Shown: positions 22,445-30,344 of the stretch, in pieces
Layout of the letters: the number at the start of each line of letters is the position of its first letter
How positions within the stretch are numbered: the stretch's first letter is position 1
Assembly (NCBI GenBank): GCA_002269645.1
Contig: NIVC01001216.1
Coordinates: 62,001 to 126,000, forward strand
DNA length: 64,000 bases
Origin: Macrostomum lignano
Taxonomy: Eukaryota
Direction: 5' to 3'
Position numbers and translations under genes: made by a program
The notes under the pieces: generated by a model
Databases searched by the model: none
What the model saw: the letters and a program-made list of their open reading frames with translations, nothing else
What the model was told of the DNA's origin: nothing

Positions 22445-22688
22445 CAGGTGGTTCGGGTGTGTCAGGTGGGTCAGGTGGGTCAGGTAATTCCGACCAGAGG
22501 GTCAGCATGCAGTCAGATAGCTAGATAGCATTCCCAGTCAGGTGGGTCAGGTAGGTCAGGTAGGTCAGGTGGGTCAGGTGGGTCAGGTGGGTCAAGTGGG
22601 TCAGGTAGGTCAAGTGGATCAGGTAATTCCGCTAGAGGGTCAGCATGCAGTCAGCTAGCTAGATAGCATTCCCAGTCAGGTGGGTCAG
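22445..22688. repeat. (ggtcaggtg)n with a duplicated block of about 65 bp, immediately 3' of the QSOX-like stop codon
   Basis: gtaattccg...gagggtcagcatgcagtcag...tagatagcattcccagtcaggtgggtcag occurs twice. Confidence 0.85.
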
Positions 22689-25600
22689 CGCCGATCGCAG
22701 CTGCCGCCCAGCCAGCAAAGCAGGGTCGCTCCGCTGGCACAGCCGGCAGCCAGCAGCAAAGCCAGCCGCGCCCAGTCCCCGCCGCCGCTGCCCTTCAGCC
22801 ACCGCAGCAGCTTCAGCAGGCAGGGCACCTCTTCATCGTAGCCTCCGTCGCCGCTGTCATTCGTCGGCAGCTCTGGCAGCCGGGGTAGCGCCGACCGACG
22901 CCGATCAACCGAAGTCATCCGTTCCGACCCCAGCGCCGGTCCGTACCACCCGACCAGGAATCTCAAAACGTCGTCCTTGTCGCCGTCGATGTCCATGTCT
23001 AGGGTAAGCCGGCAGCCCGGACACAGGCTGGGCGGCGGGAACACCCGGCCTCTGGACAGGCTGTGCAGCCGCCACAGCAGCAGCAGCTCGTCAGCTGGAG
23101 TTGCTGCTGACCACTCCGGAGCTGCAGCCAGTAGCGTCAGGGACGTCAGCGAGGTCGAGCAGGCGGCTTGGAGTCGCCGCGCAGTCGCCAGCACGGATGG
23201 CAGGCCTTCGTCGGCCCGCAGACGAGCGACGCTGAGCGACAGCAGAAGCCGCCAGCGCCAGTCGACATCGTCGCCCGCATCGCTCGGCTCGGGTTCGCCG
23301 TTAGCCAGCAGGCGGAGCCAGACTTTCGCTGACGCTGGCCGCTGCTGCTGATGCCGACGCAGGAGGTGCCGCGCCAGCACAACTACTTGGCCGGTCAAAG
23401 ATGGCAGCACGTTGCGCAGGAGGCGCAGAAAGTCGAGTAGCGCCGCTGCTGTCGCCGCCGTCGACGAAAAAACATCGGCCTCCTCGTTAGCGGCCAGGCA
23501 GGCGGCGATGTCGCGACGGAGATACTGGCGCGCGTCGGCGATCAACTGTCCGGGCGTCGGCGGCTCGGCGGCGGCGTCCAGCTCGCAGGGAGTGGCAGCA
23601 GCGACGCGGTGTCGATCCCGATGCGGCTGCGCGCAGCGGATTAGAGCGGCGAGCTCGGAGCTGGAGTTCACCTGCAGGAGGTTGATGTCGCGACGGAACG
23701 GGCCGCGAGGTCGGCCGCGCGGACGGCGGTAGCGGCTGAGCCGGACGCGGCCAGACGCGACATTGGCGTTGATGCGCCAAACGATGCGAGTTTTGGAGAA
23801 CAGCTTGCGACCTGCGGTGGTCGCTGCGGCCTCCAGGCAGCTGAGGATCGCGCGGCGGGACAGCAAGCTGTCAGAGGGTTCCTCCAGGTAGAACAGCTCC
23901 GTGGCACCGGGGACGCGGAGGACTCGGTGGCTGATTTGCGGCGGAGAAGGGTATCAGTAAATCAATCAATCAATCAATGAATCAATGAATCAATCAATCA
24001 ATTAATCTATCTACCTATCTATCTATCTATCTATCTATCTATCTATCTATCTATCTATCTATCTATCTATCTATCTATCTATCTATCTATCTATCTATCT
24101 ATCTATCTATCTATCTATCTATCTATCTATCTATCTATCTATCTATCTATCTATCTATCTATCTATCTATCTATCTATCTATCTATCTATCTATCTATCT
24201 ATCTATCTATCTATCTATCTATCTATCTATCTATCTATCTATCTATCTATCTATCTATCTATCTATCTATCTATCTATATCTAATTTATCAGCAAAAGAT
24301 AAAGTCTGCTAAAGCGACCAGCGATTAGTGAGGTGAGAGAGCAAAGAAACAAGCAGCCATCTCAGGCAAGCAGAGAACCAGAACTCACACAGACTTCACC
24401 GGTCTCAGTTTCGGCACCCGTTTCTCCAGCTGAGCAAACAGCTCGTCTTCCAGGTAATCGGGGTCTCTCGGCATTGGCAGCTCGCGTGCAGCACCTGCTC
24501 TTCTTCTAGAAGGAGCAGCAGCAAGCCAGGGAGTCTGGCGAGCGATGAATAGCAAACTGGGCAGCCCGGTCAGCTGGTAGCGGCGGAGAGCTGCGAGATT
24601 CTCTGGCCGGCTGGCGTCCATTGCCGCGAGCTTTATGGTGCCTCTCCACACTGTCATGGAAATACAGTGCGAAACTGCGAGACTGTCACTCTGCTGTTGT
24701 TAAAGACACTGTCACTCTGCTGTTGTTAAAGACACTGTCACTCTGATGTTGTTAAAGACACTGTCACTCTGCTGTTGTTAAAGACACTGTCACTCTGCTG
24801 TTGTTAAACTGTCACTCTGCTGTTGTTAAAGACACTGTCACTCTGATGTTGTTAAACTGTCACTCTGCTGTTGTTAAAGACACTGTCACTCTGATGTTGT
24901 TAAACTGTCACTCTGCTGTTGTTAAAGACACTGTCACTCTGATGTTGTTAAAGACACTGTCACTCTGCTGTTGTTAAAGACACTGTCACTCTGATGTTGT
25001 TAAAGACACTGTCACTCTGCTGTTGTTAAACTGTCACTCTGCTGTTGTTAAAGACACTGTCACTCTGCTGTTGTTAAACTGTCACTCTGCTGTTGTTAAA
25101 GACACTGTCACTCTGATGTTGTTAAAGACACTGTCACTCTGCTGTTGTTAAACTGTCACTCTGCTGTTGTTAAAGACACTGTCACTCTGCTGTTGTTAAA
25201 GACACTGTCACTCTGCTGTTGTTAAAGACACTGTCACTCTGCTGTTGTTAAAGACACTGTCACGCTGCTGTTGTTAAAGACACTGTCACTCTGTTGTTGT
25301 TAAAGACATTGTCACTCTGCTGTTGTTAAACTGTCACTCTGCTGTTGTTAAAGACACTGTCACTCTGCTGTTGTTAAACTGTCACTCTGATGTTGTTAAA
25401 GACACTGTCACTCTGATGTTGTTAAAGACACTGTCACTCTGCTGTTGTTAAACTGTCACTCTGCTGTTGTTAAAGACACTGTCACTCTGCTGTTGTTAAA
25501 GACACTGTCACTCTGATGTTGTTAAAGACACTGTCACTCTGCTGTTGTTAAACTGTCACTCTGCTGTTGTTAAAGACACTGTCACTCTGCTGTTGTTAAA

Positions 25601-28600: not shown

Positions 28601-30344
28601 GACACTGTCACTGTGCTATAGACTTCCCTGTTAAGTCTGTCACTCAGAATTGTAAGCAGAAACTTTTTAGATGTCTATAAAAGGTAAATCATAAAATTTG
28701 TGGTTATTTTTTTAATTTTGCGGGACAATTTACGTTTGGAGAGTAAAAAACTTTTTAGCAATAGAATTTGGGAAACAATGGAAATTTCTGACACAATGAG
28801 TTCTGTGGGCAGCATTTTTTCTCATGCAGGAAATTGAATTGATTGGAGGGGGGCAGATGAGGCCCGGTTTCCCCATCTTCCCTTCGAGGCGAAAATTATT
28901 AGGGATAAAAGCTATAGCTCATTGGATAGGCGAAGGCATGATTGTTTTGGAATTAATGAGAGCCAGAAACGCGCTGAATGAATGGGCACTTCTTCATCTT
29001 GCTTCTTTCTTTTTTATTGTTGTGCCACTTTTGACTGAATTGACAATAAAGCCACTTCTGATATTCACACAAATTGGTATTTATACATACGCTTCTGTGT
29101 GCCCCAGTACTAAGACTATGCAGCTTTCAGAAAATTTAGAATTTCGATTTCTATCTACTGAGTAAACAAATAGACGATTATTCAGCTGAAATGAGGTGGT
29201 GGGGGATGGAGTGAGGTGGTGGGGGAAGGAGTGAGGTGGTGGGGAAGGAATGAAGTGGTGGGGGAAGGAGTGAGGTGGTTGGGAAGGAATGAAGTGGAGG
29301 GGGAAGGAGTGAGGTGGTTGGGAAGGAATGAAGTAGAGGGGGAAGGAGTGAGGTGGTTGGAAAGGAATGAAGTAGAGGGGGAAGGAGTGAGGTGGTTGGG
29401 AAGGAATGAAGTGGATGGGGAAGGAGTGAGGTGGTGGGGAAGGAGTGAGGTGGTGGGGAAGGAGTGAGGTGGTGGGGAAGGAGTGAGGTGGTGGGGAAGG
29501 AGTGAGGTGGTGGGGAAGGAGTGAGGTGATGGAGAAGGAATGAAGTGGTGGGGAAGGAGTGAGGTGGTGGGGAAGGAGTGAGGTGGTGGGGGAAGGAGTG
29601 AGGTGGTGGGGAAGGAGTGAGGTGGTGGGGGAAGGAGTGAGGTGGTGGGGAAGGAGTGAGGTGGTGGGGAAGGAGTGAGGTGGTGGGGAAGGAGTGAGGT
29701 GGTGGGGAAGGAGTGAGGTGGTGGGGAAGGAGTGAGGTGGTGGGGAAGGAGTGAGGTGGTGGGGAAGGAGTGAGGTGGTGGGGAAGGAGTGAGGTGGTGG
29801 GGAAGGAGTGAGGTGGTGGGGAAGGAGTGAGGTTGGTGGGGAAGGAGTGAGGTGGTGGGGAAGGAGTGAGGTGGTGGGGAAGGAGTGAGGTGGTGGGGAA
29901 GGAGTGAGGTTGGTGGGGAAGGAGTGAGGTGGTGGGGAAGGAGTGAGGTGGTGGGGAAGGAGTGAGGTGGTGGGGAAGGAGTAAGGTGTTGGTGGGGACA
30001 AACAGGGCTTTAATGAGGAGAGTGAAAGATGAAGCGCCAACAAAAACCATAGTGAAAGCAGACTCACCAGCAATCTTGCTGGCAAAGCTGGCAAAATGCG
30101 TGGCATACTCAACTGAGTAGCCTCCAAACGGGCTGTACAAGAGGAGCAGCCAGTTCGCTGTGGAATTCGGGCCATACAGTGTAGTGGGCAGCTGGTTGAA
30201 GTTCAGATGCAGCACTCCACTGCTTGGCGCCAGCAGAGAGTCAAACGCGGTCAGACCAGAATCTGAGCAGATCTGTGCAACTGGCAGCTGAGCTGATGAA
30301 GCTGAGAGCTCGATCAGCAGCAGCAGCTGCAGAAGCAAGTGCAT
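22685..30344 (-). CDS. QSOX-like: Divergent QSOX (sulfhydryl oxidase)-like protein, about 594 aa, predicted catalytically dead. Exons 30344-30068, 24650-24389, 23930-22685
   Basis: Signal peptide. Trx1-like WLLLLYSPFGGYSVEYATHF...KIAVWRGTIKLAAMDASRPENLAALRRYQLTGLPSLLF. Helix-rich region QLIADARQYLRRDIA...ALLDFLRLLRNVLP. ERV/ALR end LLLWRLHS...FPPPSLCPGC...DVLRFLVGWYGP. C-terminal hydrophobic segment. Both donors are GTGAGT and phases 1 and 2 are compatible. Confidence 0.8.
23958..24283. repeat. (ATCA)n followed by (CTAT)n, QSOX-like intron 2
   Basis: Seen directly. Confidence 0.97.
24683..28617. repeat. 3.9-kb satellite of mixed 26-bp (ctgtcactctgctgttgttaaagaca) and 22-bp units, QSOX-like intron 1
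   Basis: Seen directly; the short unit lacks gaca. Confidence 0.97.
29185..29995. repeat. 20-bp G-rich repeat (gaaggagtgaggtggtgggg)n, QSOX-like intron 1
   Basis: Seen directly. Confidence 0.95.

Follow-up and report, generated by a model that had tools for sequence, protein, structure and literature searches.

QSOX is described as a self-contained disulfide-generating machine, the conserved features of which all serve the relay from the thioredoxin (Trx) domain to the Erv domain and on to flavin adenine dinucleotide (FAD) (PMC3616962). Can a member of this family persist as a protein-coding gene once the residues of the relay have been lost? This question is raised by the QSOX-like gene BOX15_Mlig026156g1 of Macrostomum lignano, which lies on the minus strand of contig NIVC01001216.1 (assembly GCA_002269645.1) and which we analysed within a stretch of 64,000 nucleotides of that contig (the window, to which all positions refer unless stated otherwise). 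The whole coding sequence lies at 22685-30344 and comprises three exons (30344-30068, 24650-24389 and 23930-22685) that join in frame to 1785 nt, i.e. 594 codons and a stop. The joined protein is 100% identical to GenBank PAA70646.1, "hypothetical protein BOX15_Mlig026156g1" of M. lignano, the annotated coding sequence of which spans the same 7660 nt; in UniRef, it carries the name 'Thioredoxin domain-containing protein'. GenBank thus lists the gene only as a hypothetical protein. Here, we report that the protein is a QSOX by descent that has lost both redox-active CxxC motifs, and we argue that it is probably a maintained pseudoenzyme.

The protein is a QSOX by descent

A QSOX is defined by an N-terminal Trx fold and a C-terminal Erv fold in one chain, with Trx2 and pseudo-Erv between them (PMC3616962). 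In a phmmer search of the PDB sequences, the seven best matches were QSOX1 chains (3t58, E=8e-6), covering Trx1 and Trx2, and the alignment paired F-G-G-Y-S of the protein with W-C-G-H-C of QSOX. Moreover, when 10 canonical QSOXs but none of the dead copies were used to build a profile, it matched the protein as one domain over residues 16-521 (model positions 27-532 of 621; 124 bits, E=3.5e-40). A single open frame carries this homology end to end, uninterrupted across both splice junctions, which supports the splice model independently.

The predicted structure points in the same direction. The AlphaFold2 model of the full protein had a mean predicted local distance difference test score (pLDDT) of 57, with values of ~70-80 in Trx1 and of 74-87 in the helical half (residues 300-510). 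When this model was compared with the PDB by Foldseek, as had been proposed in a first-pass annotation of the locus, the top 13 matches were all full-length QSOXs, from mouse, rat and Trypanosoma (E=1.3e-10, ~554 columns). The C-terminal half modelled alone reached a pLDDT of 78 and a predicted TM score (pTM) of 0.77, and Foldseek matched it to 3lli, the pseudo-Erv/Erv part of human QSOX1 (TM score 0.51), and to the QSOX of T. brucei (TM score 0.54), while the other matches had a probability of at most 0.08. Altogether, the best sequence and fold matches are those to metazoan QSOX1/QSOX2 (3t58/3t59 from mouse, 4p2l from rat and 3lli/3q6o from human).

The protein also has the elements of QSOX1/QSOX2 in order, i.e. 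a predicted signal peptide, Trx1, Trx2, pseudo-Erv, Erv, C-terminal CxxC (CT-CxxC), stalk and a predicted C-terminal transmembrane helix. Exon 1 (30068-30344, minus strand; aa 1-92 plus 1 nt) encodes a signal-peptide-like N terminus (aa 1 to ~18) and the first half of Trx1; exon 2 (24389-24650; aa 93-180) encodes the remaining half of Trx1 and the linker that leads to Trx2; and exon 3 (22685-23930; aa 180-594 plus the stop) encodes the Trx2-like region, the pseudo-Erv, a degenerate Erv, the stalk and the transmembrane helix. Within exon 3, the pseudo-Erv-like helical bundle lies at 23294-23572 (~aa 300-392, with AlphaFold2 helices at 306-389), the degenerate Erv domain at 22925-23281 (~aa 397-515) and the transmembrane-like helix at 22700-22774 (~aa 566-590), with a short basic tail between it and the stop codon, all on the minus strand. 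The signal peptide and the transmembrane helix are predictions from hydropathy, AlphaFold2 and alignment: the N terminus is hydrophobic, the top 19-residue Kyte-Doolittle window of the protein scores 1.97 at residue 569, AlphaFold2 places a helix at 566-592, and this segment aligns with the transmembrane segment of other QSOXs.

Four Pfam signatures (PF00085 Thioredoxin, PF18108, PF18371 and PF04777 Evr1_Alr) are found on nearly all canonical QSOXs among the matches listed. The sole Pfam match of the M. lignano protein was a weak one to QSOX_pErv in the pseudo-Erv-like bundle (residues 335-388, E=0.039, 15.2 bits against a cut-off of 27), and no Thioredoxin or Evr1_Alr match was obtained even at E<=10. 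The first-pass annotation, from which the QSOX descent, the domain order and the two predicted hydrophobic ends derive and are borne out here, had further stated that the full architecture is kept. This holds for the order of the elements; it does not hold for the Erv backstops, most FAD contacts, the Pfam Thioredoxin and Evr1_Alr matches and the model confidence of Trx2. In total, we conclude that the protein belongs to the QSOX family by descent.

Two Arg-rich clusters were also seen, R-Y-R-R-P-R-G-R-P-R in residues 246-258 of the Trx2-like region (window about 23569-23609) and R-R-R at residues 523-525 between the Erv domain and the transmembrane helix (window about 22770-22778); that they could be convertase cleavage or shedding sites is pure speculation.

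Both redox-active CxxC motifs are lost and the C-terminal CxxC is kept

A search with canonical QSOXs gave 205 matches, and the 120 metazoan QSOXs listed were aligned; this sample is biased to canonical QSOXs and is silent on the frequency of dead ones. Residues were placed by a 13-sequence alignment (A1), a further alignment (A3) and hmmalign, the last against a QSOX1 sequence with human numbering as in PMC3616962, and the six conserved regions of that paper were used as a checklist.

In Trx1, the active site C-G-H-C (C70 and C73 in QSOX1) is replaced by G74-G-Y-S77 (30114-30125) within the stretch SPFGGYS (30114-30134). At each of these CxxC positions, 119 of the 120 QSOXs carry Cys. The cis-proline P123 (24559-24561) is kept. 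In the Erv domain, the CxxC reads C437-S-T-S440 (23150-23161), so that it retains the interchange Cys but has Ser at the FAD-proximal position; both positions are Cys in all 120 QSOXs. The third motif, the CT-CxxC C483-P-G-C486 (23012-23023; C509/C512 of QSOX1), is kept, and it is invariant in 13/13 sequences of A1 and 120/120 QSOXs. The coordinates that the first-pass annotation had given for PFGGYS, CSTS and CPGC were exact, and comparison with the 120 QSOXs upholds its claim that both redox-active CxxC motifs are lost while the distal one remains.

The Erv alpha-4 hallmark H-N-x-x-N (PMC3616962) has also decayed. It reads H469-S-x-x-R, with H469-S470 (23060-23065) in place of H-N, as had been noted before, and with R473 in place of the second Asn; both hallmark positions are Asn in 120/120 QSOXs. 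Erv alpha-1 retains its Trp as W406 and has L410 in place of its His, and the Phe that follows the Erv CxxC has become L444. G74, S77, L410, S440, S470 and R473 sit where 119-120 of the 120 QSOXs have Cys, His or Asn. Moreover, the disulfide-bonded backstop loop before Erv alpha-1 is 6-16 residues shorter, depending on the alignment, and has lost both of its Cys, and a stretch of ~14 residues before the CT-CxxC, including the equivalent of Lys500, is deleted. The placement of the Arg401 equivalent is alignment-dependent, being R405 by hmmalign and falling within the deletion by MAFFT. Across the family, 24 of the 50 columns that are invariant in nine canonical QSOXs are kept, mostly as hydrophobic or structural residues, and 26 are lost. 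Judged by these alignments, the loss of catalytic residues goes further than the first-pass annotation saw, since it includes the alpha-1 His, the Phe, the second Asn, the Lys500 equivalent and both backstops.

The backstop loops dock Trx1 on Erv and correspond to conserved regions 3 and 6, and FAD is contacted by the alpha-1 Trp and His, by the His and Phe after the CxxC, by the alpha-4 His and two Asn, by the basic Arg401 and Lys500, and by the aromatic residue before the CT-CxxC (PMC3616962). From this contact set, W406, H469 and the aromatic F477 are kept, and the alpha-1 His, the Phe, both Asn and the Lys are lost. It follows from the established QSOX mechanism that the protein should have neither a substrate-facing dithiol nor a docking site for Trx1 on Erv, and very probably it does not bind FAD. 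The QSOX disulfide relay would not be possible for this protein because the Trx CxxC and the FAD-proximal Cys are gone, the backstop is deleted and most FAD-holding residues are replaced or deleted.

Not every missing cysteine belongs to this decay. The CX6-8C structural pair of Trx1 is absent, and M103-D-A105 in exon 2 stands where other QSOXs have L-D-C. The first-pass annotation was right that these Trx1 structural cysteines are missing; their loss, however, is not specific to this gene, because the CxxC-bearing QSOX paralogues of M. lignano lack the CX6-8C pair as well. The loss therefore predates the duplication, and we ruled it out as part of the death of the enzyme.

Origin of the gene

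An exhaustive HMMER search of 1.84 billion representative proteins gave 35 matches at E<=1e-3, the two best of which, after the gene itself, were the M. lignano QSOXs Mlig027511g2 (E=1e-14) and Mlig004329g2 (E=2e-13), with 33-34% identity. The canonical M. lignano paralogues (Mlig027511g2, Mlig008860g1/g2 and Mlig004329g2) are the nearest relatives, and the neighbour-joining tree groups them with the dead copy in one clade. CGHC, the Erv CxxC (CSRC, CSHC or CRYC), H-N-x-x-N, the Lys and the backstop loops are all present in them, and they pass the Pfam Evr1_Alr model with 47.6 and 57.8 bits. The dead copy resembles them in its Ala/Arg/Pro-rich composition, in the missing Trx1 CX6-8C disulfide and in introns 1 and 2, and differs from them in its much longer branch and in the loss of the catalytic motifs. 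In the neighbour-joining tree (356 gap-free columns), it is a long-branch sister to two canonical M. lignano groups within the flatworm clade, a placement that long-branch effects may have influenced.

Mlig027511 and Mlig004329 also have their first two introns at alignment columns 110 and 203, where introns 1 and 2 of the dead gene fall, and relative to these paralogues, with an identity of 33%, the gene has in-frame indels only. Since the paralogues have their introns at these positions, the gene is a DNA-level duplicate, and an origin as a retrocopy is ruled out.

At the Mlig004329g2 locus (NIVC01000301.1), copies of the Erv-coding exon were seen at 5411-6457 and 16238-16945 of the locus sequence (L003), ~10 kb apart, and the annotated 626-aa Mlig004329g2 model repeats the 'LW..HN..CxxC' stretch. 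It is possible that this model is chimeric and spans a canonical QSOX gene that is partly duplicated in tandem.

A second intact copy, and the possibility of a relic

The M. lignano genome contains a second copy of the gene, PAA83456.1 (Mlig032762g1) on NIVC01000419.1, with an intact open reading frame (ORF) of 594 aa in a matching neighbourhood, i.e. with an ABC transporter gene upstream and a Kelch gene downstream. Large-scale duplication of the M. lignano genome is known (PMC5730564), and the second copy fits with it. Neither copy has a stop or a frameshift in its 594 codons. The marks of a pseudogene, a broken frame or intron loss together with a poly(A), were not seen; the frame is open and the two introns are at ancestral positions. 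Moreover, the M. lignano annotation was built with RNA-seq, StringTie/TACO and a de novo transcriptome (PMC5730564), so that the identical public model is indirect evidence for a spliced transcript.

The two copies differ at 7 of 1785 coding positions, 4 of which are synonymous and 3 nonsynonymous, giving a ratio of nonsynonymous to synonymous differences per site (pN/pS) of 0.28. Nonsynonymous divergence between them is 0.23% compared with 1.2% in the flanking intergenic DNA, i.e. ~5-fold lower (p=0.003). The GC content of exon 3 is 68.5%, and an open frame of 400 codons or more arose in 3 of 5000 composition-matched Markov simulations of this exon. A chance origin of the open frame is unlikely.

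Is the gene maintained, or is it a functionless relic, an inactive QSOX duplicate that drifts, is still transcribed and has stayed open by luck with the help of its high GC content? Several observations weigh against maintenance and are what a relic would be expected to display. The gene has the longest branch of the family tree, more than half of the family-invariant residues are lost together with several deletions, and no Pfam domain is above threshold. Residues 137-300, which comprise the Trx2 region, have a pLDDT <50 and are low-complexity, and the sequence is Ala/Arg-rich with a GC content of 73% at third codon positions; the low pLDDT and the composition are compatible with relaxed constraint as well. 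No orthologue outside M. lignano was found among the 1.84 billion representatives by HMMER, a search that is blind to relatives more than 50% identical to the gene, as these are merged into its cluster, and on which this negative mainly rests, because word-indexed searches with the protein and with A1 recovered its own cluster alone and missed even the paralogues in A1. The first-pass annotation had called for this search and for a dN/dS analysis; the pN/pS obtained here rests on seven differences and is not significantly below 1 (binomial p=0.096), so that selection is not demonstrated, and the comparison of exons with non-coding DNA is confounded by repeat-rich and possibly faster-mutating sequence. 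A high GC content also makes ORFs longer: in the exon 3 simulations, the longest open frame had a mean of 174 codons, and long chance ORFs do arise in such DNA. Finally, neither the gene ids nor the protein accessions or UniProt ids occur in the literature full text searched or in the supplementary files of PMC5730564, PMC5816591, PMC7336406 and PMC12896417.

Neutral drift to ~33% identity should, however, have left many stops and frameshifts, and there is none in either copy; nor is it easily reconciled with the rarity at which exon 3 stays open in the simulations. In addition, retention is non-random and includes the hydrophobic core, the cis-proline, the CT-CxxC, the signal peptide, the transmembrane helix and the splice sites, the helical module is confidently predicted, and the nonsynonymous divergence is lower than that of intergenic DNA. 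In total, a relic is unlikely, and the gene probably encodes a maintained pseudoenzyme.

A possible binding role and the remaining cysteines

We propose that this is a protein-coding, transcribed gene of M. lignano that arose by DNA-level duplication of a lineage-specific QSOX and later turned into a pseudoenzyme. The protein would enter the secretory pathway by means of its signal peptide and be anchored by the C-terminal transmembrane helix as in QSOX (type I), and its predicted fold comprises a Trx-like domain and, after it, a module of two helical bundles. We infer that it acts by binding instead of by oxidation. Contacts with cysteine-rich secretory or matrix clients may be made by the part of the Trx fold that surrounds the cis-proline and/or by the cysteines that survive, i.e. 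the lone C437 and the CPGC pair, and the protein could function as a membrane-tethered luminal or extracellular escort, scaffold or decoy beside the active QSOX paralogues. The first-pass annotation had likewise suggested a non-catalytic role, as scaffold, chaperone, decoy or trap.

A more specific version, in which the protein is a membrane-tethered 'thiol trap' or decoy that uses the CxxS of C437 and the CT-CxxC to capture cysteine-rich clients or to compete with the active paralogues, is a long shot; it is speculative because the natural partner cysteine of C437 is missing.

Alternatively, the protein might carry out thiol-disulfide exchange of a non-QSOX type, without FAD or oxidase activity, in which CPGC and/or C437 form mixed disulfides with partners. 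C437, C483 and C486 are kept while all other family cysteines are lost, and C437-x-x-S440 contains the same substitution as the engineered C455S of mouse QSOX1, since 3t58 is the C76A/C455S trapping mutant of that protein. Mixed disulfides of this kind would resemble the way in which PDI-family proteins with a single cysteine hold back or pass on their clients. On the other hand, the Trx1 CxxC that would be the natural partner of C437 is absent, the docking backstop is deleted, and the sequence has no sign that the cysteines are reactive or exposed. We consider such exchange improbable, and a binding role of a maintained pseudoenzyme is favoured over it.

Exon-intron structure and transcript signals

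The first-pass annotation had proposed an intact spliced ORF of about 594 aa across repeat-filled introns of 5.4 kb and 0.46 kb, and this proposal is confirmed by the in-frame GT-AG model and its identity with PAA70646.1. The donors of both introns are GTGAGT and both acceptors end in AG. Intron 1 (24651-30067, minus strand; 5417 nt, phase 1) is almost all tandem repeat and contains a satellite with a 26-nt unit in ~159 copies (24682-28617; TRF) and a second array with a 19-nt unit in ~42 copies (29192-29992; TRF). Intron 2 (23931-24388, minus strand; 458 nt, phase 2) contains (ATCT)n and (AATC)n microsatellites, including (ATCT)68 at 24005-24278. Because the introns are nearly all tandem repeats, an ORF list shows the gene only as fragments. 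In the second copy of the gene, intron 1 is ~3.4 kb long (10277-13664 of that locus sequence, L001), compared with 5.4 kb here, and the 19-nt repeat has a different copy structure. The length gap is due to the copy number of the 26-nt satellite, and the duplicated loci differ mainly in their repeat arrays.

It is very improbable that the gene model is wrong, with other exons or a retained intron and the 594-aa protein as an annotation artefact: exon 1 is readable for 296 codons beyond its donor, but this read-through lies entirely in the stop-free 19-nt repeat, which is built differently in the second copy, the QSOX homology is unbroken exactly over both junctions, the intron positions and phases are common to the paralogues, and at both loci the public annotation, which is based on transcripts, yields the identical protein. 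The 388-aa ORF at 29178-30344 (minus strand), which runs from exon 1 through its GT donor into this repeat, was rejected as an artefact. A second frame of the 19-nt repeat is also open, for 364 aa; it is a repeat artefact with no coding evidence.

The ATG is immediately preceded by an in-frame TAG, and directly 5' of the start codon there is an acceptor-like sequence with a T-rich tract (30345-30360), which reads TTTTTAATCCATAG before the ATG. Trans-splicing in M. lignano has been described (PMC5730564), and the acceptor-like AG before the ATG is possibly a spliced-leader acceptor, as on many M. lignano mRNAs. An AATAAA is located 407 nt downstream of the stop (22277).

Neighbouring genes

Directly upstream of the QSOX-like gene, there is an ABCC-type ABC transporter gene (~31500-56000, minus strand), syntenic with that at the second copy, with one ABC_tran domain (35067-35675) and two ABC_membrane domains (37478-38014 and 52074-52787), all on the minus strand. 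Apparently within an intron of this gene, ~1.1 kb of (ACC/GGT)n at 54526-55861 gives rise to poly-Thr/poly-Val ORFs of 390-430 aa. Downstream of and convergent with the QSOX-like gene are the exons of a Kelch-repeat gene (17022-18773, plus strand), which is also present at the second copy of the locus, with BACK and Kelch domains. Finally, two MFS/sugar-transporter-like exon sets with near-identical C-terminal segments lie at 542-2657 and 8901-9921 (plus strand), which suggests a tandem pair of SV2-like transporter genes.

Relation to known proteins and implications

Dead paralogues are common across enzyme families. The M. lignano protein shares with QSOX1/QSOX2 the cis-proline, the alpha-1 Trp, the alpha-4 His and the CT-CxxC; it differs from them in its low identity of 21-26%, in the missing Trx CxxC, in the change of the Erv CxxC to CxxS and in the loss of the structural disulfides, of the Lys500 equivalent and of the backstop loops. 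Every QSOX already contains a pseudo-Erv domain, an Erv-fold bundle that has lost FAD and CxxC and has a structural role (PMC3616962). The Erv domain of the M. lignano protein seems to have followed a similar course, and one chain would then hold two pseudo-Erv-like bundles; the case differs in that the pseudo-Erv of QSOX is ancient, universal and part of an active enzyme, whereas here it is the catalytic Erv of a whole paralogue, in one species, that has been affected.

A second comparison is with ERp29/Windbeutel, ERp27 and ERp44, which are PDI-family Trx-fold secretory proteins that are CxxC-less or have a single Cys and that bind or escort clients; ERp29 joins a dead Trx-like domain to an all-helical domain. 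Together with the pseudo-Erv domain, such proteins are precedents that lend plausibility to a binding role. No specific sequence or fold match to these proteins was obtained, the PDI-family matches being generic and to catalytic Trx domains; moreover, the helical module is here Erv-derived and the protein is membrane-anchored.

In the literature searched, no published QSOX without its redox motifs was found. The patterns of the 2013 survey of the QSOX family tolerate Ser at the CxxC positions, and single-Cys variants may therefore have been met earlier and passed over.

The finding carries limited weight, since it comes from a single species. Within this limit, the gene is a natural experiment that bears on which elements of QSOX are important for something other than catalysis, notably the unexplained CT-CxxC, and it would add QSOX to the enzyme families with pseudoenzymes. 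If the thiol-trap reading were true, this flatworm would possess a regulator of extracellular disulfide formation that is not an enzyme, and such a role is undescribed for the QSOX family.

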